Shown: positions 1 through 19,677 of the stretch, piece by piece
Position numbering within the stretch: the first letter of the stretch is position 1
Layout: the number at the start of each line of letters is the position of its first letter
Assembly: GCA_023515725.1 (NCBI GenBank)
Contig: JALDTO010000174.1
Coordinates: 1 to 19,677, forward strand
Direction: 5' to 3'
Source: Amoeboaphelidium protococcarum X5
Lineage: Eukaryota > Fungi > Aphelidiomycota
Length of the DNA stretch: 19,677 nucleotides
The notes under the pieces: model-generated
Seen by the model: only the letters and a program-made list of their open reading frames with translations
Database searches by the model: none
Told to the model about the DNA's origin: nothing
Position numbers and translations under genes: made by a program

Positions 1-173
1 AGGCTAGCAAGGAGGAGTTTGAGAGCAAGCAGAAGGAGCTGGAAGGTACTGCCAACCCAATCATGACCAAGCTGTACCAAGCCGGTGGAATGCCTCAAGG
101 TGCTGCTCCAGGCGGTGCTCCAGGTGCACCTCAGCCAGACACCACCGGTCCATCTGTTGAGGAAGTTGACTGA
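1..173 (+). CDS. HSP70: Cytosolic Hsp70, C-terminal fragment (5' partial)
   Basis: The frame from nt 3 reads [56 protein letters not shown] followed by TGA (171-173). [12 protein letters not shown] and the terminal EEVD are diagnostic of eukaryotic cytosolic Hsp70. Confidence 0.97.
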
Positions 174-475
174 TATTCTCACTGAATAAACTGAATTTAC
201 TGAATATGGCAAATGAAAGTGGCTGAATAAATATAATAATAATAACTCATGATTCTTGTTAATATGTTTACATTTATTTTCTTAGTTGATACAACAGTTC
301 CATTCACTATAGTGATGACACGCGTTATTAATTTGCTTCCTCATTGCTCAACAAACTACTTCACTCGCTCACTCTCTCCCTCTATCGCTGTCGAAATCGC
401 CCGCCCGACTTTACACGCGTCAATCGCTTTGAACCACACTGTAAATAGTAATTGCTATACAATTTGGTGGTGGAT

Positions 476-627
476 TTAACTTTAACTGATTGAAATTATC
501 AAGCGCTGGACAATGACAAAGTTGCTTATATCATGGTGCCGTTTATACTAAGAACTGGTTGCATAATGAAAATTTTAAAGTAGAGCCTTGAAGAGTCATG
601 ATTATAAACTATTAGGCTGTGATGACA
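476..627 (+). repeat. Diverged direct repeat, copy 1 (~155 bp)
   Basis: Aligns by eye to 1074-1232 (shared blocks ttaactttaactgattgaaa, ttgcttatatcatggtgccgtttata, gagccttgaagagtcatgatta); roughly 80-85% identity with one 1-nt and one 6-nt indel. Confidence 0.93.
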
Positions 628-1073
628 GTCTGAGTTGGACAATCACAAGGTTACGGTATAATAACGCTCTTATTTCTAACACAATGGGCAGTCTCTTTGT
701 CGTCATGATATGGCCATCTTACAACTGATGTTCACTGCTCGTTCTTTCTACAGTATTTAGTCAAGTTTAATTAAGCTATAGAATGCTTCTACGTGAAGAA
801 ACTTTATTGGCCTCTGATCTTTATTAGATGCTATAACGTGTTCGTTAGCCTTTTCTACCTTTACACCAATAGCCATTAGAGTGTAGAATGCCCGATTCTA
901 TTTAAAAGACGATCAAAGAGCTCAGATTAGTTGCGTTGTTTTATGCGTCTCAGTATATGTTGTAAAAGACTTACAAGCTGATGCTTTCCAACCAAGTTGT
1001 ACAGCGCTGCACAGCTAAACTAATCGAGAGCCTTAATGCACAAGTAGGTGATTACATAATACGAGATTAATGA
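477..1073 (+). pseudogene. Possible decayed coding sequence; contains a 96-aa table-6 ORF at 783-1073
   Basis: One + frame has only two internal TGAs (567, 726) before TGA 1071. ATG 783 gives MLLREETLLASDLYQMLQRVRQPF...GDYIIRDQ*. No homology recognised. Confidence 0.3.
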
Positions 1074-1232
1074 TTAACTTTAACTGATTGAAACTATCAA
1101 GTGCTGGACATTGATGTAGTTTGCTTATATCATGGTGCCGTTTATATTAAGTACTTGTTGCATAACGCAAATTAGAAATTCAAAATTGAGCCTTGAAGAG
1201 TCATGATTAGAAACCACTAGGCTGTAACGACA
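1074..1232 (+). repeat. Diverged direct repeat, copy 2
   Basis: Second copy of 476-627, offset by about 600 bp. Confidence 0.93.
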
Positions 1233-1616
1233 ATACAAACTGAATAAAGGGGAAGATAGTAAACGTTTCATCTAATTTAGAGCTTGAGTATTATGTTGTC
1301 AAGTTATAACGCGGTCTTTGACTGGCTCTAAAAGATAGTATGACTTTTGATAATCAGCCATCAACTTTAGTTCTAATGGTGCAATCGTTTCACTGAATTG
1401 CATAAAGCCTGCACGTTTCACTTTCTCTCCCTCTCTGCCTCTGTCTCTGATTCGTTTTAATCCGCCGAGGCTTGTCTGTCAGAGTTAACGTGTGAGATCC
1501 AAAAGCTTTTCCTTCCCGGTGCGCGCGCGTCGCTCTTTTTTATCTTCCTCTCAAGGAAACTTTCTTCCTTACGATCTTCAATTACCCGAACACGTATTAT
1601 TAATTCCAAAGGGAAG

Positions 1617-3079
<1,463 letters not shown>

Positions 3080-3280
3080 ACCTGAATAGTTGGGAGTGGT
3101 ATCAGTAGGATGAGAGTTTGCATTTACTAAGTTTAATCAAGTACGCGCGTAATAATAAAGTGAGTGATCAATTACTTTAGTTTCATCTTGTCTTTCTCTC
3201 TCTATTTCACCTTTAGGAAGCCTCAATCAATTGAAATCTAAAACTCTCTATAGCGTTAAAGTTTACATTATAAGTAAAAA

Positions 3281-3886
3281 ATGTAGTAATTTAATGTTGG
3301 ACATGTATTCTCTTGGAGCGATTGTGAATAGATTATTTAAAGTGAAGCATTTGAACTGTTTAAGCGAACGCCGGCCCAACTTGAAGATTACCGACGATGG
3401 ACAATATAAACACTGGATAGATACGCTTCCACCGATGATTATATAAAGCATGTCGTTTTAGGATGGGATGTGAAAGAAGAGGCAGTTGATACTAGTCAAT
3501 CAACTAACGGTTTATTGAATCTGTTGAACGTGCAACCTCAGGATGCTGTTACTACTACTCCCAACTCTGCTTATTAAATAGCCCTTAGATTAGTCGCATA
3601 TCGCCGTTTCGAATCCCAATCTATGCTGTAACAAGATCGCCTTTAGGTAATCCTCAAGTTTAATGATTTTCCGTACAAATTTGAAGCTGGCATTCTACAT
3701 TACTGTCTCTGGTCTAACCAAGATCTTTCACGCAATTTCATAGAGTAATACATTGATGAAGCCTTTGATAGTCGTGTGTATGATATTTTATGGTTCATGA
3801 ATCCGCCTCACAAGAAAACGATCAAAAACGTCTGGCACGTTCACATTTTACTAAGGAAATGTTCTAGTGATCATACAGGTGTTTGA
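3281..3886 (+). CDS. GIG1/DUF3605-family (HIT-like) protein, 201 aa
   Basis: TGA-free frame beginning ATG-TAG-TAA: FSWSDCEQII, KRTPAQLEDYRRW, DYIKHVVLGW, NDFPYKFEAGILHYCLWS, WFMNPPHKKTIKNVWHVHI. These match recalled DUF3605 motifs (NDxPY, WFxN, HxH). Absent from the standard-code ORF track. Confidence 0.85.
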
Positions 3887-3939
3887 TTATTAGTTGATCG
3901 AGAATATGCAAAGACATCATCATATTTATAATCTATATA

Positions 3940-5547
3940 TCATTGTAGTTTACTCATTTCCAATGCTAGCCATTTTAAATATTTTTCTTGTGTCATATTG
4001 CACTCTTTGAACTCATTCACCAGGCAGTGGAGCGTGAGGAAATCAAACTGTCGACGCGTCTCAACTATTTTCGATCTGATCTCACTCTGAGACTTTGTTG
4101 CAATCAATTCATGCTGTATTAGAGTAAGATATGCCAAACAGACTCGGAACAAATGTATATCACCATGAAGTAGATAAAGGTCCATAGTTCGGAGACATAG
4201 ATCAATTGGAAGCACATTAGAGCATACTGATTGCAGCAAGTCAACAATGAATTCAAATCCAACGTCAAATTTGACCAAGTGAGTATACAACTCAGGCGCG
4301 TACTAAGCTACAAATAAACCAAATACTTTAATGTGTGCTTATTTAGAACTTTATAGTTGCTAATATTCACCGTGATAGACAGCTTGAAAGAGCGGTTACC
4401 GCAACAGATGGCTTACTATACGGACAGTTTCAACAGGATCTGCAGTTACCATTTAAACAAGTTTAACCAGTTGCAAGTGATTACGCTGAACAATAAATGA
4501 TTCTGATTACCTCGTCATTGATGCAATAACGTGTATCACTTCCTCATCCACAGTAATACTATCATTGACGCGTAGACATTATTATCGCACTTGATCCAAG
4601 AATTCAGATGATTATATAATTTCATTCATCTACCGAATATGCATCGCAGTCTTATATTCTCCACCACAGCAATGCAGGATCCAAACTTGCTTGCGAACAT
4701 CACTCGGCAATGTAAGATCCCAGACTTTATGCATCCTCCTACTGCTTTGTAGCTGTTTAAAGTTTGGTATACCAGTCTACAACCACCATTTAGATGCCTG
4801 TTCTAATCGCTTCTGGAATCTCTTCTCACTTCTCAGGGAGCTCAATTTACGCCTCTATTACAGCTTTTAGAGTCGCTTGTACTCCCTCAAGTGTTTATCA
4901 TCCTCACTCTTACTTTTAGGTGGTAGATTCCGCTATCGTGTCTTGGATACAAAATCTTGCAATGACGGACTAGATACAAACTTTCGCTCCGATACCTTAT
5001 GTCTACTACCTTTACCGCAATGGATGTCTGCTTACGATGTTGATGAAGATGTTTAATACTTTACATCAGATAGTAATGGTGGTGAATTCATTGGAGTAGA
5101 GACTGGAATCTCTTCCATATCGAAATCTTGAATAAACGCCTAATTAGTTGATGGAGGCATCTTGATAGATAATGCACCGCTGGTGGAATATACTTAATGC
5201 GTTTACTAATCTTGATCATGAGCATTATCTATATGCGATTGATACTTATCATCCAGACTTACATCTGATAACTATGCAGACAGTTGACCATCGCTTCTAA
5301 AACTTTATACAGATGGTGAATTACGCTCTTGGGATCTACTTCTCACTTTAGCGGAACTTGATTATTATTACTATTATTATTACTACTACAAGTTTGCAGA
5401 TGACTACTAGGACTACATTAATTCAGCCGCTCTTATGTCCAAACTTGAAAGACTTGATATACTCTATCGATTGCCAGACTTGATATTGTTAACGTTCCTC
5501 TTCTTACTCAGTATCATTGTCCCTTTACTAACATCTTTCTTATCCAT
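3940..5547 (-). CDS. TBC (Rab-GAP) domain protein, TBC1D12/14-like, divergent; 535 aa
   Basis: Single TGA-free frame from ATG 5547 to TGA 3940. TRQRNLPPKSKSEDDKHLREY resembles the TBC1D12/14 LPxKxxxExxKH motif; also LPSDVRKQVW, PELYTHL, LPIDLCLRTMDLYLLHGDIHLFRVCLA. Low-complexity S/Q-rich N-terminus. Confidence 0.82.
5362..5388 (-). repeat. Poly-glutamine tract (Q9) encoded only by TAA/TAG
   Basis: The minus strand reads TAG TAG TAA TAA TAA TAG TAA TAA TAA, in frame within the TBC ORF. Confidence 0.88.
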
Positions 5548-5948
5548 ATCTCTAATATAATATTAATGCAGATATTAATACAGTGGTAGAATAATATATT
5601 ATATAAAGTTAAAATTGAACTACTCAAAAGCGAATCCTTCAACTTGTAACACTATCGTAATAAAGTGCAGACAGTAATGAGATAAAGAGGGTGAGTGAAT
5701 GAAGACTTGCGCTATAATTGCTCAAACAAGTCTGTAACGGTTAGAACGCAATTTTCACGTAATTATAGACTTTATACTTGAGATGATTATATCTTGAAAA
5801 CTTTTAACATAAATTCCAAATCAGACATTTTAATCCTTTAAAAGCTCATACAGAATATTGAGTTGATCGAAACTTTAAAATCTTGATTGACATTCTCTAG
5901 GGCGATCTCTCCTTTTTGGGCTTTCCATCAACAACGTAAATATTGATT

Positions 5949-7836
5949 ATGACTGAAGGAAATTAGTAATAACAGAAATCGGCGGGTAAGTTGATAATAT
6001 TTACAGTAAATTATAGCGACTATATATCACGTCACTTGTATTGTAGCTATATTGTCAGTGTCTGATAAGACTGGCCTAGTTCCATTTGCTGAGGGATTGT
6101 CTAAGCATGGTGTTGAACTATACGCGTCAGGTGGTACGTTTAAATGTCTATAACAGGCTGGTATTCCAGTGAAGGAAGTGTCAGAATTGACTCAGGCTGC
6201 GGAGATGCTTGGTGGAAGGGTCAAGACTCTGCATCCGGCTGTACATGGTGGCATATTGGCAAGGAGAGACATGGAGCAGGATCGCAAAGACATGTAGGAT
6301 CGCGGCTTCCAGTACATTGATTATGTGGTGTGCAACTTGTACCCATTCGAGAAAGTGGTGGCGCAGGCTGGTGAATCTCTGTCGATGGAGACTGCTATTG
6401 AAGAAATTGATATTGGAGGTGTGACGTTGCTGAGGGCGGCGGCCAAGAATCACAATCGCGTCACTATTGTCACTGATGTCAAGGATTATGGTAAGGTGCT
6501 GTAAGAGCTGACTAATGAAGGATAAGTTTCCACCACTTTAAGATAGACGTTGGCATTGAAAGCTTTTGAGAGAACGGCGAGTTATGATCAGCATATATCT
6601 GAATTTCTCTCTACCAGATTTGCTGACTCTAATCAGTTGATGAAACTGCGCTATGGTGCTAATCCACACTAGTAATCTGCTTCAGTGTCTATTGCCGGAT
6701 AACAATTGCCGTTTAAGGTGCTGAATGGAAGTCCGGGTTATATTAATCTGTTGGATGCGTTAAATTCTTGGTAGTTGGTGAAGGAACTTGGCTAAGCCAC
6801 AGGAATTTGTGCTGCTGCATCGTTCAAGCATGTTAGTCCAGCCGGAGTAGGATTAGGCCTCCCATTGTCTGATGATGAGCGCATCGTCATGCAGGTTAGT
6901 GATATGAGCGCGTTGAGTCCAATGGCTAGTGCTTATGCTCGTGCACGTGGTGCTGATAGAATGAGCAGCTTCGGCGATTGGATTGCCCTGAGTGGCCGCT
7001 GTGATTTAGATACTGCCAAATTGATTGGCAAAGAGGTTAGCGATGGTATCATTGCAGCTGGCTATGATGCGGAGGCACTGGAGATATTGAAGAAGAAGAA
7101 GGGCGGCAAGTATTGTGTGCTGTAGATGGATAGTAGTTATGAGCCGGCTAATGCGGTCGAGAGTCGCGATGTTTATGGACTGCGTCTGTCTTAGTCTAGA
7201 AATGGCGCTTAATTCTCCTCTGAACTTGTCAAGAGTTTTGATGTATTGTCCAAGTGCACTGATATCAACGACGCGGCCGCTAGAGATATGCTGGTGGCTG
7301 TAATTGCTTTAAAGTACACGTAGTCTAATAGTGTCGCATTTGCACATAATGGTATGATTGTTGGATTAGGTGCTGGTTAGTAAAGCAGAATTCATTGTAC
7401 GCGGTTGGCTGGGTCTAAGGCTGATTGTTACTGGCTCAGGTATCACCCTAGAGTGTTAGCTATGAAGTTCAAGCAGGGAATTAAGAGGGCGGACATTTCG
7501 AATGCCATCGATTTGTATGTTAGCGGTGAAGTGTAAACTATGCCTAAGAATGGAGTAGAGTATAATGAGTGGGTGTCCAAATTTGATGAAGTAAGTGGAC
7601 CACCGGCATTGCTGACTGAGGCTGAAAGATAGGATTGGTTGAATAAGAGACGTGACGTCGTCTGTGCCTCTGATGCCTTCTTCCCATTCCCTGATAATGT
7701 ACACCGTGCTCATAGAAGTGGTGTCAAGTATATAATTGCGCCAACTGGAAGCGTTCAGGATTAGTAAGTTATCTCTGCAGCGGATGAGTACGGCATGGTT
7801 TACGCCAAGAACTCATTTAGACTGTTCCATCATTGA
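5949..7836 (+). CDS. ATIC: Bifunctional AICAR transformylase/IMP cyclohydrolase (ATIC, ADE16/17, PurH); exons 5949-5985, 6047-7836; 608 aa
   Basis: [101 protein letters not shown] and the terminal RLFHH-TGA. Confidence 0.98.
5986..6046 (+). other. Spliceosomal intron of ATIC (61 nt, phase 1)
   Basis: GTAAGT...TATTGTAG; removal joins [20 protein letters not shown] in frame. Confidence 0.88.
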
Positions 7837-7988
7837 AGGATATTTGTACCTAAAGACATACGTATTAAATGGTGGATTGCATAGATCAAAGCGACAATGT
7901 AAGAGATTCAGGCTAATAAAGATTGAAGAATTAAAAATTATTAAGTCCATATATTTTACCTTGACTTTAGGAATACCAATTAAACAGG

Positions 7989-9602
7989 TCACTATCCGCC
8001 CATAACACAGGCGATAAGAGCTGCACCTACACCACTACCATCTCTGGCCAATTCAAGTTTGATATTATCAGCAGCGATACCGAATATTTCGCGCAAAGCA
8101 TCCAACATTCTATTCTTAAAGTGAGGATAGAATTCAAAGACTGAGCCGTCAATAGCCACAGTGCATCCACTCAAACGGTTCATCTGAGCGATAACACCAC
8201 CGACACAGGCAGCGGACAGTCGTGCGGCACGGATACCAACACACTCACAAACTCTCTTTACAATACGCCTATCTTCAACACTGGTAGAATCAGGACCCAG
8301 GCACATCAGATCCTCAAGAACCCACTTTGTATCGCTCAAGTCCTGGCTGTGATCACGCTCAATTCGCGACATGAACAGCGTAGTGAAAGAGTATGAATGC
8401 ATAAACTTGCTAGCCTCAATCTCTCCAGAGTTGAACAAATGTCCATTAGATGCCAAATCCAAGATGATGTAGCGCACAATCTCACCCATGTAAAGACCAC
8501 TGACCATCTTTTCCAGCGTTTATGCACCAGGATTCTCGCTCGCAGCATCCAACATTCTATCATACTTACTTATAGGCAACACGACTCCTTCATTATCAAA
8601 GTTGCCCCACTCGATATTAATAACCATTCGCTTAGGCTCATTATCATCAAAGAAGCGAACATTTGGCGGAGTGTCCTTCTTCATGTAATGCGACTCCCAC
8701 TTTTTTATATTATCCATACTCTCCACGTATGCAGCATTAGTTCCCGTGCCCAAGATGACACCCACCATGGTCTCGCCGTCCTGATAGCAATGTGCCACCA
8801 GCGTACCGACAGTATCATTCACAATCGCAACAATCTTGATATTAAGATTCCTCTTGGCAAAAGCATCACGCATCATAGCCACAACATCATTACCCAGCGT
8901 TCCCTTGACTTCAAATCCCTTATTCCAGTTCATCAGGATACCAGAATCCAAAGATGTCTAGTCCACAGGGAATGAGAAGGTGAAGCCAAGCAGTAGAGGC
9001 TAACCATCAGCATTAGGCTTGATCATGTTCTCATCCAGGAATTCTTTGGTACAGTCAGCAATGTAGCCAAACAGAGCATCACTATCAGATACTTTGTACT
9101 CATCACTCAACACATACTTCTTCTACCTCAACCTGAACTTCCCGGAGCCTTCAAGAGCAACTTCACACACGCGCAAGTTGGTGCCACCGAGATCCAAGGC
9201 CAGATAAGTGCCAGTCTCCATACCGGCAGGCAGTTTAGTGACGAAAGATGGTAGAGCTTTCAGCGTCTGGCCGTGCTTACTCAATCCAGACTTTAACTCG
9301 GCGACAAAGTGCTTGATAATCTCATGCAATTAAATGGTTGATATTCTAAAAGTATTACCGATTTCTCTAACAGCCAAATCTGCACCATTCAATTACGCGC
9401 TTCTACTAGACGGCAGAGAGCGTCGTCTATTGGAAGACAGGTCGAACTATGGCCAGAGATGGTCGAACAAAGAGAACCAGCTTCTACCACCAGATGAACG
9501 TTTTCGGAGCAGCGATAGCGGGATAACAGCAGCGAATGAACCTGCTAAAAGTCCAAGCCAAAAAGCTCTCGATTAAATCAACGCAGATAAAGTCTAAGAC
9601 AT
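7989..9602 (-). CDS. HXK: Hexokinase with N-terminal hydrophobic anchor; 537 aa
   Basis: One TGA-free frame: ALDLGGTNLRV, LGFTFSFPVDQ, WNKGF, IVNDTVGT, ILGTGTNAAY, NIEWG, NPGAQTLEKMVSGLYMGE, IDGSVFEFYPHF, DGSGVGAAL. Ends GG-TAG-TGA. Joins three fragments of the ORF track. Confidence 0.96.
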
Positions 9603-10413
9603 TTCTAAATAAATTTCTAAATATGTTTAATCAGAATGTGTTGACAGGAGAGTGATTGGATGATTGGATAGAGACTGGTCAAAGGTGATTCCAGCGTTGT
9701 CGCGCAGCACAAATTTTGGTTCTCACGCTTTCTATCGCGCGTCCGTGTTTACGATGTTTCGGTTTATCTGAACGATGATTTGTTTACGGCTCCGGGGTAC
9801 CGACCGTACTGCAGCGATTGATCGAGGCTACTGTAGTAAGTGCTGTAGACTCTATAAAAAGACGGTAATTGGCCAAATAGATTTACTTACTATAAACATC
9901 AGGGTCCAAAGTCCACTAAATGTAAAGCGATATACGTGATCAACCAGTCATCCGTCACCTCAAATGTTTAATCGCCTAGGTAAAAGATATGATGTTAATT
10001 GAATAAGTTAGGGATTGCTTGATTTCTAAAACATCGTTCTACACCAAAATTACATGTATCATGACATGGATGTTTTATAGTAAAAAGCTATCTCTCCATG
10101 GTGGATTGACGGAGCTCCATCTATTCATCTTAAACTCTACCGATCGCCTAAAAGCTAAAGTCACCTCACCATTGTTGCACATCCATAAAATTTATTTATA
10201 CGCGTAGGTTCTCTTGTAACAATCGAATCAAACGGCACCGCCAATCTTTCTCGCTTCGGTCTCTTGCCTGTTAAGGTTGCCGCCGTTGTTCCTCATTCCA
10301 TTGAGCCATTCAACTCCTATCGCTTCAACCAACGACGACGACGACGACGATATCTCTCTGTCTCTCAGCATTTGATAACTTCTCCTTCCTCCTCTCTCTC
10401 TTCTCTTTTTATC
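9603..10413. promoter_or_regulatory. Divergent promoter region between hexokinase and aspartate aminotransferase
   Basis: Head-to-head genes. Tandem CCAAT boxes on the minus strand (ATTGG at 9655 and 9663), CCAAT at 10241, CGCG motifs at 9736 and 10200, CT-rich tract at about 10352-10410. Confidence 0.55.
10332..10350 (+). repeat. (ACG)6 microsatellite upstream of the aminotransferase
   Basis: acgacgacgacgacgacga seen directly. Confidence 0.85.
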
Positions 10414-11703
10414 ATGAGTCGTCCGTCATCTTCATAATCATCATCATCATAAAGAGATTCAGATATGTCTGCTAGAGTTAAATTGTTTTCCAAGGTTCCG
10501 CTGGCTGCTCCTGATCCAATATTCCACCTGAATGCCCAGTATAAGGCGTGCACTAGTCCGCTAAAGATAAATTTGGGTATCGGTGCCTATCGTAATAATG
10601 AAGGTAAGCCGTGGGTTCTGCCTGCTGTTAAGATGGCAGAGAAAAAGATTGTGGACTCTATAATGAAGGATCAGTTGGATCATGAGTATCTTCCTATTGA
10701 GGGATCAGAGAAGTTCTGTGAATTTAGTAGCAAGTTTATATTGGGTGAGAACTCCCCGATGAAGGTGGCCGCTGTCCAGGCATTGAGTGGTACTGGTGCT
10801 TTGAGAGTCGGTGCAGTGTTCTTGGAGAGATACCGAAAGGCCACTGTGTATGTGAGTAATCCAACTTGGGGTAATCACAACAACATTTTCAAGGATGCTG
10901 GCTTGGATGTAAAGCAGTATCGCTACTGGGATGATAAGAATAACAAGCTGGACATTAACGGTATGCTGTAGGATATTCAGAGCGCTCCAGATGGATCCAT
11001 TATTCTGTTGCATTCCTGTGCTCATAATCCATGTGGTATTGATCCTACCTAGGCTGAGTGGAAGAGTATTGCAGAGGTGATCAAGAAGAAGCAGCACTTG
11101 AGTTTCTTTGATTCGGCATACCAAGGCTTCGCTTCAGGTGATCTGGACAAGGATGCTTATAGTGTTCGCCTGTTCACTCGTGAGTATGGCCTAGAAGTTA
11201 TGATTGCTTAGAGCTATTCCAAGAACTTTGGTCTGTATAATGAACGTGTTGGATGTTTGGTCGTTGCCCACTCTGGCGATAATGACACTAGCAAGGCGAT
11301 CAAGAGTCAACTGGCTAGAATCGCAAGACCAATGTACTCTAATCCACCTGCTCATGGTTGCAGAATCGTGACCACCGTTCTGTCTGATCCTGAGCTGTAC
11401 AAGGAGTGGAGCAATAATGTTAAGACTATGGCTGGTAGAATTAACAAGATGAGACATCGTGTGGTGGAAGAGCTGAAGAATTTGGGTACTCCTGGTGATT
11501 GGTCTCACGTTACCACGCAGATTGGAATGTTCTCTTACACCGGCCTCAAGAAGGAGCAGGTCGCCTTGATGAAGGAGAAGTTTCATGTGTATTTGAGCGA
11601 TAATGGCAGAATTTCGATTGCAGGTCTGAATGATAGCAATGTTGCTCATTTTGCTAAAGCCATCGACTATGCAGTTAAAAACACCTAGAAGTCCAACCTA
11701 TGA
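10414..11703 (+). CDS. AAT2: Aspartate aminotransferase, cytosolic type (AAT2/GOT1); start at 10414 (429 aa) or 10465 (412 aa)
   Basis: APDPIF, NLGIGAYR, KPWVLP, VQALSGTGAL, AHNPCGID, FDSAYQGFASGD, the PLP-lysine motif AQSYSKNFGLYNER, YSNPPAHG, QIGMFS, GRIS. Ends TQKSNL-TGA. Confidence 0.97.
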
Positions 11704-11978
11704 ATCAGTTTATGAATTATAAGAGATATATATTTTAAAACATAGTGTCGCGCTTTCTAATAATACTTTTAATACTTTTTTTTATTACATACCTTTTTGT
11801 CTGACCTTACGTAAGATGTTAGTTGGCCTTGCATACTTGAAAGATCTAATTGTGATTTTGATGCTGTTTCAGACCACGTTCTGTTTCTTAAATTCTAGTC
11901 GACACGTTAACGTTGTTCATTGTTTCACATTCCATTGTTTCATTCATTACAATATATCACACTTTTACAATCCACATT

Positions 11979-13118
11979 ATGTTGCCAGTTATTGCAGACG
12001 CGTATATTGAAGCTTAGTAATGTTCTCAAGTGTTGAAGAACTTCAAAGACGATCTTCAAGAAGCTGGAAGAGTGTGCAGAATCATTTACTGGAGATTTGG
12101 ATTCAATCTGATGCAAGACTTGCAAGCATTCGAGTTGCACGTTATCACTCCATTCCTGCTAACTGACACATTGAAGCATATAATTGATATTGCAACTACA
12201 AAAATGCACCCAAACAAAGCTTCTGATACTATCTCTGCTGATACACTGTTTTAGCCTTCTAATGACACGCTTGGCTATGACACAATGCAACCTGTCAGTC
12301 CGTACGATTATGAAACGTATTCCGTAAGAAGACTGTGTATTGAGATCTTGAGTGAAATGTCAAACTATGCAAAGTACAGAGCTGCAATTGGCAGACATAA
12401 AGCATTCTTGCCTGAAATGGTTTAAGTTCTAAAAGCTATTGTACATGAAATAAAGTATTCCAATTTATATGTGAATGATTACTTTAAACTGGTAAATTGC
12501 TCATTCATGGCAGAGAGAATTGTAAACCTGCTGGCCAATCTCGCGTTTGATCTGGACTGCTCAAAGTATGATCGAGTCACTCTGACATTTAAAATCCACC
12601 CCTAATCTCTAACAAGCAGGGTGAATCATCAGGCTCGTAAAGTTAAGCCTCTGAAACGGTACGAGACTGATCTGCGGGCCCTCAAGAGCAACCATCAAAT
12701 CTAATAAAAGACTAATAAGAAGCATTTGGTAAACTCGGACACTGTCTGTAGTTATTTGATTGAGAATGTTGCACCATTGCTGCTTTCCAACTTTGACGCG
12801 TTGTTTGGAGATTAAGAAGACCCTGAGATTGAAAGTCTCTGGTCCGTGACAAGATTCATTTCAAACTGCTCAAGATTTTCTTCCAAGATGGTACTGCTAA
12901 AGCTGTCTGTATACAATCCCGTTATGTATTTGTACAGATGCATGTGGAGACTGCAAGACAATCTGATTTATCTGAATGCACAAGAATAAAAGTATGCAAT
13001 AATTTTAGGGGAGATTGAGGCAGCATCAAAAGCCATCCTGTATCTGTCTAATTAATACCACGAAATGCTACGCCTGCATCAATCTTCTCTCTGCTGGGTG
13101 GAATGTTCCGAAGAATGA
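11979..13118 (+). CDS. Uncharacterised 379-aa protein, possibly an ARM/HEAT-like alpha-solenoid
   Basis: 380-codon frame from ATG 11979 to TGA 13116 with no internal TGA. Segments RRLCIEILSEMS, ERIVNLLANLAFD and SLWSVTRFISNCS resemble ARM helix 3. The fold is an inference. Confidence 0.75.
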
Positions 13119-13479
13119 GTTGTGAAACAGTGCGACACGCTCGGCGACGATCGCGACGGTGACACAACGTCCACAGACTTCCATCGCCCAACGTGAAAGA
13201 TTGCTTTGGAAGAAAAGAACATGAACGACGATGATTCTAGGCATTCTATTTTCCCGCACCCCTGATTGTCCCGAGGCGGAGGATTTTTTCAATCTTCTTT
13301 TTTCCATATCTGTGCTCGTGTTTTGTAATTAATAAATTTGTTAATCTTCACATTTATCTCTGGACGTGTTGTGTGTATATTTGTTTATCACCATCTACAA
13401 TCGTAACTATTATTATTGAACATTATCTTATTAGCTCATCAATAAGGAAACAATTTGGCCCTGCTAGTTATTAGTTGTA

Positions 13480-14631
13480 ATGAATACATCGTCGTCGTCC
13501 TTAGAAGAGAAGGAGCAAAGCCAATCGCCCGCGGCCGCCGAGAATGAATGCAAAGCTAAAGAATGGCCGAAAGATGGATCAGATCACCAAGGTTCTGGCG
13601 CGTCTTTGCGCTATGGTTAAAATGGTAATCATAATTATTCTAATGGTACAACTCCGTCTGACTTGCATGCATCTGGGTATTTAAGTCCATTCGGCTTGTT
13701 GATTCCACAGTCCTTCGTAACTCCACCTGATGTGTATCCGTATAATCAGCTGAGTGGTAGTGGTGGATTACCTATGGCTGCTACTGCGCCTACTCTTCCG
13801 TTGGTTAGTCAACAGTTTATAACTCGAGCCTATTAAATGCCTCCTGTTTAGCCATTCTATCTACAACCACTGCACGCTGTTTCTGTTGCTAATGTGCAGA
13901 GAAGAGGCGAGTCTTCTGTACGCGTTCCTGGAGCTGGCACTTCGCTAGCGTAATTGAATACTGAACACTAATCAGTTGAACCTCAGGTCGTTAAAAAGTA
14001 GTAGCGTAACGTTTACATCAAGAATCTCCCCGCTGATGCAACAAACGATAGTTTGAAGGCTTTGTGTTAGAGTTTTGGTAATGTCGAATCTGCCAAGGCT
14101 ATTTTGGAGTAATAAGAGCTCAAATCGGAGACTGGATAGTTACTGACACAGTACGGTAAATGTAAAGGCTATGGATTTTGTCTATTCTAGACTGAACACG
14201 AAGCAGAGAAAGCTATTGCGGGTCTGCAGCAACTTGGTTATATTGCATCCATGGCCAAAGAGTCTGTATCGAAAAAGCTGAAACAATTGGCCGATGAAAG
14301 TACCAGTAACGTTTATCTTTCCAGTCTGCCTTTGTCTGTGGATGATGATCAGCTGAAAGAGATTGGCGAAAGTTTTGGTGAAGTCATGAGTAGTCGCGTC
14401 ATGGTTGATTCTAATGGAAAGTCCAAAGGCGTCGCCTTTATACGTTACGCGTCGCGTTCCAGTGCGTAGGCAGCTATTGATTCTCTCCATGGCAAGCTGT
14501 TGACTGATGAGTGTAAAATTCCTCTACAAGCTCGATTTGCAGATTCCTAGTCCCAGAAGCAATTCAAGAAGCATTATGCTAATCGTCTCTATCAGAAAAT
14601 GTTGTATCACTAGTCACCAAGACAAGAATGA
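13480..14631 (+). CDS. Two-RRM RNA-binding protein, MSSP/RBMS (Shep/Sup-26)-like; 383 aa
   Basis: RRM1 NVYIKNLP...SAKAIL...CKGYGF; RRM2 NVYLSSLPLS...SKGVAFIRY...PLQARFADSQSQK; P/S/Q-rich N-terminus; ends in TGA. Confidence 0.88.
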
Positions 14632-14878
14632 GGATATTGATGGTAACTGATTCGACCAGCACCCACCCACCCATTCACCCACCTATCAAATTAAGTATAT
14701 TAATTTAAAATGTTTTTTCTCATAAGCCTATAATAAATAATATTAACGTATATAAATAAACTATTAAATTTATTTAAAGACTTTTATTAAAAAGTAGTTC
14801 AATATACTGATGCTTTAACTCGCTTTAAGTAATCAGCACCTCGATATTCAGATATAAAAAACCTCACACACCAAATAA

Positions 14879-16159
14879 TCATTTCAATGGGAGCTTGTTC
14901 AAGATTCTCTAATAATCCTCGATAACGTTCTCATAAGTCTCCTATACTGCATCTTTGCGCTCTTCTTCATCATCAATCTCTGCCAGAGCTTCAGCATTCT
15001 TCGAGTAGATGCGCTTCTTTACCCACGTTCTGAACTACGACGAGTTTTGTAAAATGTCATCAACACTTTGATACTGCAATAAGTGGCGTAGTAAGTGAAT
15101 TTCCATTAAAACTTGCATATGCTGAGGTGAGAATTTAAGTTTGATACGCAGCTCTTCAATCTCAGCAGGGGATGGTATTACGTATCTAGAATCCAAAGAA
15201 GTGTTACCAAGGGCATTCTTTAAAGTATTCAGATCGCATATAGTTCGTAAATCACTAAACGCCTCAGTGGGATCTTCAACAGTGATGTCCTTTGCATGAT
15301 CATCTTCTAGAAAACGTTTATACAGATACTTATACATTGCATATCCAACTCCTTGTCCCTGATAGAAAGGCAGGATTAGTGCCTGACTAATTCGTTGTCT
15401 AATCTTATCTGGAAAGCTGTAAAATTTGTAGCAAGTCCAAACTCCAGCTAGTAATTAAATCTTGGAGTGTCCATCCTTCTACTATTTGTATATCAAGTAA
15501 ATGTCCCACTTGTCATCCTCCTCGTCAATGTACGTGGCACCTTCAATGTAGAACAGCATAAAGATTTAAACGCGCCGATACCAAGAATCAAATCCATCGC
15601 TCTGACCAAAAGAAGCTTTATATACATTGAACGTAGTCCCGCCAACTTGAAATTCACCGTCGTATTCACCATACAATGTCCAACTGTCCTCATCATCTTA
15701 GAGCCACTAATGTTCAAACAGAGCGCGGTCGCAAGTCCATTCGCGTCCTTAAACCGCGAGAGGAGACGTTGACGCGCCATCGTTGAGCTGAAGCATTTCG
15801 CGTAACAGAGGCACCACAATGTCCTATACTGGATCTGTCTAGGTAGACTCTGGCATCGGCGTCATTCTACTAGAGTATTCAATCTCGACTAGTGGCCGGA
15901 AGCTTATATAGCTGAACGTTAAACGCAATTTCAGATCCTTGTAACCAATAATTTCTTCATCAAAACCATAGAAAACGTAGGTGAACTTTGGGTGACAAAC
16001 TGCCGTCTCTCTAGCATGACGGCTCATCAGTCGAAGTTCAACCATTTCATTAGTATTGACTCGCCATTAATCATCCACCTGGGATTCATCATCAAACTTT
16101 AATTTCTTCTTACTTGGTGATACCTGCGATTATTAAGAGGTTGTCATCATGAATAGCAT
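14879..16159 (-). CDS. HAT1: Histone acetyltransferase type B catalytic subunit HAT1; about 426 aa (start 16159, 16150 or 16147)
   Basis: HPKFTYVFYGFDEEIIGYKDL, RVQIFMLFYIEGATYIDEEDDKW, RISQALILPFYQGQGVG, DITVEDPTEAFSDLR, VKKRIY. NLS-like PSKKKLK near the N-terminus. Single TGA-free frame. Confidence 0.95.
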
Positions 16160-16345
16160 GGAATTCTTTTTGAAAGAAAAACAACATCCGCAACTGCTTA
16201 TTGACAAGTAACAGAGAAAAAATCTGTTGAAACAAGACAGAGTTAAAGAGAAGATGAGTGAAATCTAAACGCGAATCAACACTTGTATTGTTTTGCATGA
16301 TTTTGACTAGACATCATAAACTCTGTATGTAGACACTACCGTGAT

Positions 16346-19300
16346 TCATTGTGAATTACCAATACCATTAAGGACATCAAAAGAGGAAGCACTAGCGTTA
16401 TCTCCGAGCTTTTACGCCAAAGACTGCTAGTATAATGCAGGAGTGTTGTTACTATTTCTTCTAGATTGACTTGCCTTTATGAGAATGTTAAATTGACACA
16501 GTAGATGACGCGTCACGGCAGTTATTATATCATCTTAACCAATAATTTGAACTCCACCGCCAAATATAAGGTGTACCGCGGTGTTATCAATCACAGAACA
16601 AAGCTCCTTCATATTAGTAACGGTGGGGTCACTTCGCAGTTGTTCAATCTTGTGCAATCGATCAGCGTCCAGCATACCCATAATAAGAGTTGCCAGGGAC
16701 CACATGATGTAGTTCTAAACTCTTTAATCCAGAGGTTCATTTGGTACTTTTCTCATCCATTTGCCGCTTGATTCCAACTATCTATTAGATGCTCCAGTCT
16801 CCCATCGAATCGATAACGGACCAAAATCTTCTCCATCACTGGAGAGTACATTATCGCCAGTCTGTAGATGACCATTAATGATATACAACTCTTTTGAAGT
16901 GAACTGCAAAGTCTACCAACTTAGTTCGACTGACTCCATATTTGCAACAAGAACCGGAGTAGGAAAGGAGCTGCAGCCATCACAGCGACAGCTGCATGAA
17001 GATATCTTTGTCATCTCATCCCTCAGAGCTTGCATAAAATCATCAACTATGCCACCAATCTTTTAGCGATGCATACCAGGAACCGAAATTTACATAATCT
17101 CCGGCATAGAGAGTATAGAACGGAGTTTAACCGCGTTATCTACAGCGAGCAACTACGCCCATTAGCTCTAAATTCCATGCAAGAAAGACTCATACAACAT
17201 TGGCCTACTGGCTGTAAAATGATGGTGACGCAGGGGACAAGAAGTCTTGCGCTAAGAGTCAGATCCATAGTTTGCGGCTTAGTTAACATCATTGGACTTG
17301 AGCGTATCATACGGAGGGATAGAGACACCAGATTTCAAAATCTATTCAATGTGAGCGGATAGCAGCAATAAAGGTACGGACGCATCGCTATTAACTTTCA
17401 GCACTAGGCTCTTATTAGGCCCACTATCCTCCTCAAAATGTTCAAAGCCGATATAACTTTCATTCAGAAGCATCTTGATCATCATAGTAGGCTTCCACTT
17501 CATTGGATTAAATCTATGCACGACAGTTTGTCTAACTTCTTGAGATGCCTTTCTAGCTAATGATGCCAATAATGCCTCCACCTTACGAACGAATGGCAAG
17601 TTCTCCGAGGCAAGCGATATCAACTCCTAACTAAACATCTCCTTGTGCTAACTCTTCATCAAATCTCCATCAGTCAGTTGTAAAGCATTAGCCAAGCGAG
17701 CATTCCTCAACTTGATCTCACACTCTTCCGTGCAATGAAGCTCACTCTGCTTTTATGAAGCCTCAAAACATGGAACCATTTGCTCAATATTGCCACAATT
17801 ACATGCAATTTTGACTTTCTAATCACATTTTGATATTTCATCACACGGTAGAGATGAACCATTCTAAGCATTGTCATGACAAGACAGTCGACATAGATGA
17901 CCACATATCCTTTTTAGGCCGCACACTTACATGCATTTAATATCCTGACAATCGCCACTATGACAGCCACGAGTACATTTATGATGACAATTCGGCAACT
18001 ACTTACCACACAAGTTCTGGCAATGATAATCCCGTCCGCAATACCATTTAGCAGTTTCGCGCCCACAAACGCACCTCTTATCCAGAACCTGAACCAGGCA
18101 CGTAGGACACGGCGTATCAGGAGGATGACAAGGATGCCTCATACCACTTCTACCCAATAGACTAGACGCTAGTTCGGAGGTGAGCTCATAATGACCACAC
18201 TCTCGCGGCCTGGTGCAGGTGAAAGGACATGAAGGCAATTCTTGGCCGCACCTGACAGGGCCCGCCATAACAGTTCTTCCACAAGAACACACATAATTGT
18301 CATCGTAGTCAATAATCAGCGCCGTACACTTTCTACACTTGCCTTTGTGGCATGGATCTTGACACTTGTGAAGCCCACAAGGTAACTGTTTTCCACATAC
18401 CATCTCACATTTATGCTCTTTAAGCTTACAGCAAACCTATTGACACTTGTGCCGCTTACAATCAAACTTTTCGTTACAGACTTTATCGCACAGAAATTAA
18501 AAATCTTCTCTATTCATGTCGACGCATTTAACATTCTTATGTTATGATCCACAGCGACAATATGCGATAACTTGCTGCTGGCATTCATCGTAATGACAAG
18601 CCATTCCTTGCGGATTCATCTAGTCACCATCATTTAAAATGTCAAGTAATAATGGATTATAATGACATTTTAACTTGCAAGATACTTGATGCCCACAATG
18701 CAAAGTACGCTTCTATGGACACTGCGAATCGCATGTCATTATCGGATCAATGCATTTATACCTCTACGCATTCATAGAAGATTATCGACCACATGGACAA
18801 GCTTTGAATCTTTAAGGCGATAGAGGACAAACGGAATGATCACTATCACTTTGAGAATGACACTTGAGAGCACAACGATGGACACCACACGCATAAGCTT
18901 AACCACACGTTCTGCCACACTGATATGGAAGTAGCTATTGACCCAGACCACCGGATACGCATAAAACATCCTTCGAAGATTATCCACAATAGCATTTAAC
19001 GTTGTAAGTCACCGAGCAAGGTCCACAATTACCGGCATGACACGATTTTTAACATTTGTGTTTACCACAGCTCAGCATCTTATCACATTACTAACCACAG
19101 CTCTTCTAGTCCAACAGCTATCCAGCACCTAGCGCCTACTAATCCATAATTAAATCCCGACACTTCAATTGCAGACGCGTCTTTCCACAATAACAACCAC
19201 AAACAGATGGAGGGGCCATTGCATCACAAGGATCGCACGGACCTGCATGACACAAACTAGTGCATTTATGGGGACACTTATACAGCTAAGAACTGGAGCT

Positions 19301-19677
19301 GTCACCAAACAACGAGCGCGATGATGTCTATTGTTAAAGTTTCTACAATCCCAACAATTTCTGACACTACTAGCCACACGAATGAGCGCTCATAAATCTA
19401 TCACCCGCCGGATTTTCCAACTTGCCACAGAAACAGAAATACTTTTTAGGCAGAGCAGATCGCTAGTGCTGACAATTGGGACATCTCCATACCTATTATT
19501 GCTGAGACTGCGTGGATCCGACAGAAGATACAGACTTTACAGAGTGTTGAGCCCACTCAGAGACACATTTCAAGTGCAATACACCATAACAGTTATCACA
19601 GGACCAAATTGCGTCACGGAATCTAACATTTTCACAGCAGATTGAACAAGTATAAACCTCAGCATCAAGTGCCTTCT
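16346..19677 (-). CDS. NFX1: NFX1/FAP1-family RING + NF-X1 zinc-finger protein (5' partial, about 1110 codons visible)
   Basis: RING YTCSICCENV...IWSCDNCYGVLHLKCVSEWA...WRCPNCQ; YFCFCGK; repeated CGxHxCxxxCHxGxC fingers; LHCTEECEIKLRNARLANAL; an R3H-like region. No TGA in frame until 16346. Confidence 0.95.

Follow-up and report, generated by a model that had tools for sequence, protein, structure and literature searches.

The genetic code in which UAA and UAG specify glutamine (Gln) and UGA terminates translation, NCBI table 6, is known from ciliates (Tetrahymena, Paramecium, Oxytricha, and Stylonychia), and also from hexamitids, oxymonads, and ulvophytes. For the aphelid Amoeboaphelidium protococcarum, a parasite of algae, a reassignment of UAR (UAA and UAG; TAR in DNA) to glutamine was reported by Karpov et al. 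in 2013 (PMID 23058793), as cited in PMC5304391 and PMC6299283, and genomes of this species were presented by Mikhailov et al. in 2022, as cited in PMC10057920. Another aphelid, Paraphelidium, uses the standard code (PMC6299283), and the A. protococcarum code, in a relative of fungi, is accordingly of an origin independent from that of the ciliates. Here, we analyzed a stretch of 19,677 nucleotides from A. protococcarum X5 (contig JALDTO010000174.1, in its whole length referred to as the window) for the meaning of its TAA and TAG codons. We conclude with great confidence that the window is nuclear DNA of A. protococcarum written in a ciliate-type code, with UAA and UAG read as glutamine and UGA as stop. 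Species, assembly, and codon meaning are those already published, with nothing different in the code itself; A. protococcarum was already reported to use this code in 2013, so that the observation is real but not new. Its practical consequence is that windows of this genome need to be translated with table 6, as most of their genes are hidden otherwise.

Once TAR is read as sense, almost the whole window is covered by long frames. The 11 gene models, built with TAA and TAG as sense codons and TGA as the stop, add up to 5,062 codons and contain 84 TAA and 96 TAG codons in frame (180 together), next to 77 CAA and 77 CAG and not a single internal TGA. Reading TAR as a stop would truncate 8 of the 10 complete genes within 60 codons (ATIC, 35; SUB2, 17; NFX1, 59). 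All nine TAA/TAG sites cited by the first-pass annotation of this DNA proved to be in frame on the strand given there, and all 11 genes do end in TGA as it had claimed, a statement that becomes circular wherever a gene lacks a conserved terminus (the hexokinase gene, for instance, ends GG-TAG-TGA).

That the encoded residue is glutamine follows from the agreement of three independent tests, based on conserved alignment columns, on codon swaps between duplicate gene copies, and on tRNA genes. In homologue sets of ATIC and SUB2, TAR faces glutamine at seven of seven columns with a conservation of at least 80% (TAG, 6/6; TAA, 1/1), and control codons face their standard residues. Six of these codons lie in ATIC, all of them on Gln columns, which bears out the earlier proposal that TAG and TAA occupy conserved glutamine positions in this enzyme (Gln share of 95/97 at 6670, 45/49 at 7321, and 40/42 at each of 7378 and 7381). 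The sole conserved-column result in SUB2 is the TAG at 2366, within exon 2, with glutamine in 55 of 55 homologues. The cited sites in the hexokinase, aminotransferase, and HAT1 genes and in the Q-motif of SUB2 fall outside these deep homologue sets and were confirmed as in-frame codons.

The second test makes use of another copy of the whole window, about 90% identical, on contig C264. Between the two copies, TAA/CAA and TAG/CAG swaps occur at 0.140 and 0.148 per site, compared to 0.117 (TTG/CTG) and 0.205 (TTA/CTA) for synonymous control swaps and 0 to 0.043 for nonsynonymous T/C swaps at the first codon position. TAA and TAG are exchanged with each other 23 times, and an exchange between TAA and TGA was never found in the aligned gene pairs. 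TAR and CAR (CAA and CAG) interchange between duplicate copies at the synonymous rate. These data show that UAA and UAG are ordinary glutamine codons, used about as often as CAA and CAG and freely exchanged with them.

For the third test, the first-pass annotation had expected tRNA-Gln genes with UUA and CUA anticodons, and the genome carries them, two copies of each, on contigs C158 and C200. Their nearest relative is tRNA-Gln(UUG), which tRNA(CUA) and tRNA(UUA) match at 50 of 72 and 52 of 73 positions, respectively, against at most 38 for any other tRNA tested; acceptor stem type and U discriminator are shared as well. tRNA-Gln(CUG) was absent among 63 scored tRNA matches, which is uninformative since the nuclear tRNAs for Leu, Val, Pro, Asp, and Tyr were absent from them too. 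On both duplicate contigs, the CUA and UUA genes are linked at a distance of 15 to 21 kb, and they are alike at 68 of 73 positions. This linkage and likeness indicate that the two tRNAs have one origin, older than the genome duplication. A tRNA-Gln may have been duplicated and its anticodon changed to UUA and CUA, and the resulting tRNAs would be charged with glutamine by glutaminyl-tRNA synthetase.

As in ciliates with table 6, the two additional tRNA-Gln species are accompanied by alterations of both the TASNIKS and the YxCxxxF motifs of the release factor eRF1. Both eRF1 gene copies hold TAR codons themselves and end in TGA. Compared to human and plant eRF1, the protein keeps GTS, E55, NIKS, and S70, whereas TASNIKS reads AAVNIKS and YLCDNKF reads YQCDNRF (T58A, S60V, L126Q, and K130R in human numbering). 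T58A is common to the UGA-only ciliates Oxytricha and Stylonychia (AAQNIKS) (PMC4695839), whereas at position 126, a specificity site, the aphelid carries glutamine instead of the phenylalanine usual in ciliates with UAR as glutamine (PMC4482090). L69Q was dropped as a code-linked change because plant eRF1 (PDB 8ip8) has the same glutamine. The motifs make it likely that eRF1 is biased against UAA and UAG, and they would also be compatible with a factor that is strictly specific for UGA. A UGA-restricted eRF1 had been predicted from the window, and this prediction stands as far as altered motifs are concerned; the restriction itself is deduced from these motifs. Presumably, the eRF1 changes weaken UAA and UAG recognition, so that the tRNAs win the competition, and gene ends would have shifted to TGA as CAR codons turned into TAR by drift in an AT-rich genome. 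With these tRNAs and this eRF1, A. protococcarum offers a test case for a fungal relative converging on the ciliate solution, and its eRF1 resembles the yeast and human proteins closely enough for use in standard readthrough strains.

Could the same pattern arise without a reassigned code, or in an organism other than A. protococcarum? Pseudogenes or sequencing errors, for example in a decaying duplicate subgenome, come to mind because the genome is duplicated. Yet both copies carry TAR and keep their frames, with 86 to 99% protein identity for complete genes; TAR falls on Gln columns, TGA is missing from the interior of every model, the source reads agree with the window, and even the two eRF1 copies hold TAR, so that we give this explanation practically no credence. 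U-to-C editing occurs in other eukaryotes, and a standard code with TAR edited to CAR in the mRNA would leave the same genomic trace. The first-pass annotation had itself named cDNA edited to CAR as grounds against its reading. An RNA contig from a freshwater metatranscriptome (n = 1, depth of about 4), in which SUB2 intron 1 is spliced out, has no differences from the window over positions 1942 to 2161, and its five TAR codons, including TAA-TAA at 1946..1951, are therefore not edited; no U-to-C editing was seen at the TAR sites that it covers, and in another sample the codon at 1668 shows a TAA-to-TAG variant. With dedicated CUA and UUA tRNA genes in the genome besides, editing is very improbable. 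We attach just as little weight to a new lineage with a reassignment of its own. For the proteasome beta-5 gene on contig C57, a piece devoid of TAR is 100% identical to the A. protococcarum protein KAI3641497.1 (MIR68_000627), followed by the aphelid Paraphelidium at 91% and then, among the named matches, mostly by chytrids and other early fungi. KAI3641497.1 is moreover the translation with glutamine at all four TAR codons, identical over 269 amino acids; NCBI proteins already carry glutamine at TAR, which means that the code is in use in public annotation. The GC content of 40.5%, the genome-wide duplication, and the two TPPP genes likewise fit the published descriptions (PMC10608142, PMC10057920). 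The internal transcribed spacer (ITS) primers for FD01 (A. occidentale) found no match, with 7 to 9 mismatches. Barring a mislabeled NCBI assembly, the earlier proviso that the code would be new only in a different lineage thus resolves in favor of A. protococcarum, and the novelty is gone.

A less remote alternative is that UAA, although glutamine inside genes, also terminates translation in a minority of genes when close to the 3′ end of the mRNA; such a context-dependent meaning would refine the table 6 reading rather than replace it. Some of our data do weigh against the simple scheme of UAA as glutamine and UGA as the only stop. Just one TAA sits on a well-conserved column of the homologue sets, so that the assignment of TAA as glutamine draws chiefly on the codon swaps and on the tRNA. 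In both gene copies, an in-frame CVVM-TAA stands 20 codons downstream of a Ras-domain match, at a place where a CaaX box is expected to be the last element of the protein (C136:319132-319146, minus strand; C244:237737-237751, plus strand; known up to the TAA only), and may be a TAA stop. In addition, eRF1 retains the GTS, E55, NIKS, and S70 elements, and the yeast equivalent of L126Q, L123Q, has a mild effect, with readthrough of UAA, UAG, and UGA at 4.4, 5.4, and 3.4% compared to 2.6, 2.6, and 2.4% (PMC4482090, Table S3), for which reason strict UGA-only specificity is not established. In the corresponding motif search, CLIL-TGA came up as the end of a Ras-family gene. On the other hand, CVVM-TAA may also be CVVMQ followed by a stop. 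TGA closes every one of the 31 distinct gene ends that we read, including those with the conserved tails EEVD, RLFHH, and HEEL (the argument is circular where no conserved tail exists), and the two copies never swap TAA for TGA. CaaX-like motifs are followed by TAA at the control level (74 versus 76) and by TGA above it (75 versus 46), and after H[D/E]EL, motif counts give TGA 12, TAA 3, TAG 3, and TGG 6, with TAA no more frequent than TAG. One gene copy ends I-TAA-HEEL-TGA, and in this copy a TAA at a distance of five codons from the end is apparently translated. Within the last 20 codons of the 31 genes (620 codons), TAA occurs 6 times against about 9 expected, an underpowered comparison without clear depletion. 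The genes of the window lend UAA termination no support. Taken together, UAA termination is possible but rather unlikely and, if real, is a minority event, and UGA would end all or nearly all proteins. The claim that TGA is the sole stop agrees with every gene end read and has a possible exception in the CVVM-TAA Ras-family pair. Only if UAA also terminates would A. protococcarum resemble Condylostoma, Parduczia, Blastocrithidia, and Amoebophrya, in which stops have dual meaning; unlike in those systems, UGA is a dedicated stop here, with no sense use seen. Only UAA termination would make the result new, and such a dual-meaning UAA would be the first codon of this kind in a fungal or animal relative in the literature searched.

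With UAA and UAG as glutamine, the window reads as follows. Pfam families were assigned from TAR-free pieces of the proteins (in the case of SUB2, from exon 3 alone) and comprise helicase, ATIC, hexokinase, aminotransferase, RRM, NF-X1 finger, and DUF3605. The last 56 codons of an Hsp70 gene (3..173, plus strand) end in EEVD-TGA, an end that is identical in copies on other contigs. Hsp70 and its downstream flank (1-1075) occur at least four times in the genome, including two places on C264, which is above the usual two copies, and between Hsp70 and SUB2 a stretch of about 155 bp occurs twice (476-627 and 1074-1232), 83 to 88% alike and about 600 bp apart, for which an Rfam search gave no match. 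SUB2/UAP56, a DEAD-box helicase identified by Helicase_C and its homologues (1617..3079, plus strand; exons 1617-1827, 1944-2467, and 2534-3079), encodes 426 amino acids with 3 TAA and 8 TAG codons. Its first intron is a 116-nucleotide GT..AG intron (1828-1943), the one removed in the RNA contig, and is spanned by the PSEV-TAA-TAA join, in which the TAA-TAA (1946..1951, plus strand) takes the place of QQ in the Q-motif region of the helicase; the second intron was placed from GT/AG and frame. A DUF3605 gene follows (3281..3886, plus strand; PF12239, E value of 6.8e-6; about 201 amino acids with an approximate start codon; 6 TAA and 3 TAG) and then, on the minus strand, a 537-amino-acid gene (3940..5553; 21 TAA and 16 TAG) that by eye is putatively TBC/RabGAP-like, contains a TAR run around 5360-5415, and is 87% identical to its second copy.

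ATIC/PurH (6046..7836, plus strand; PF01808; 10 TAA and 10 TAG) ends in RLFHH-TGA and is modeled with 596 codons counted from 6046, the true start being slightly upstream. In the hexokinase (7989..9602, minus strand; 537 amino acids, 4 TAA and 6 TAG), PF00349/PF03727 matches flank the TAA at 8520, over which the profile runs on uninterrupted (positions 2-69 and then 73-242). The aspartate aminotransferase (10465..11703, plus strand; 412 amino acids, 4 TAG) matches PF00155 in both pieces, is 99% identical to its second copy, and ends T-TAG-KSNL-TGA; with TAG as glutamine, the tail (11686-11703, plus strand) ends in a PTS1-like (peroxisomal) -KSNL, which is kept in the second copy. It is followed on the plus strand by a 379-amino-acid gene without family assignment (11979..13118; 8 TAA and 2 TAG), whose frame is open in the second copy at 86% identity, and by an RRM RNA-binding protein (13480..14631; PF00076; 383 amino acids, 6 TAA and 9 TAG). 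The last two genes lie on the minus strand. A putative HAT1-like histone acetyltransferase (14879..16159; 426 amino acids, 7 TAA and 8 TAG) was named by eye and had no Pfam match in the one piece scanned, and an NFX1/FAP1-like zinc-finger gene (16346..19675; PF01422; 19 TAA and 30 TAG) has its 5′ end beyond the window. The latter extends about 330 codons past the recognizable region (16346-17340, minus strand), and the second copy keeps this frame. The window itself contains no tRNA or Rfam match.

Several further observations concern the genome as a whole. In the sample nearest to the assembly, contigs identical to the window over 1600-7590 have about twice the depth of those from the second copy (196 versus 95, 153 versus 82, and 117 versus 61), which may mean that the two subgenomes are present at 2:1, contig depth being a weak measure. 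The ribosomal DNA, located through its 5.8S gene on contig C233 (L070 7340-9420), shows two identical 5.8S genes within an exact repeat of 535 bp, spaced 1,545 bp apart and with a 3′ piece of the small-subunit gene between them, a duplication that is probably an assembly artifact; on the same contig, a 5S gene adjoins the end of the large-subunit gene on the other strand. Gag-like frames with a terminal CCHC zinc knuckle lie beside tRNA genes (L009 1818-2858; L029 1743-2879) and use the TAR codons of their host. Contig C346 (28 kb), AT-rich and with clustered tRNAs and a large-subunit rRNA, is probably the mitochondrial genome. Finally, near-identical sequence is present in a 2013 biofilm metagenome (Logan SRR845265) and in a 2024 freshwater metatranscriptome, which points to close relatives that are active in nature.

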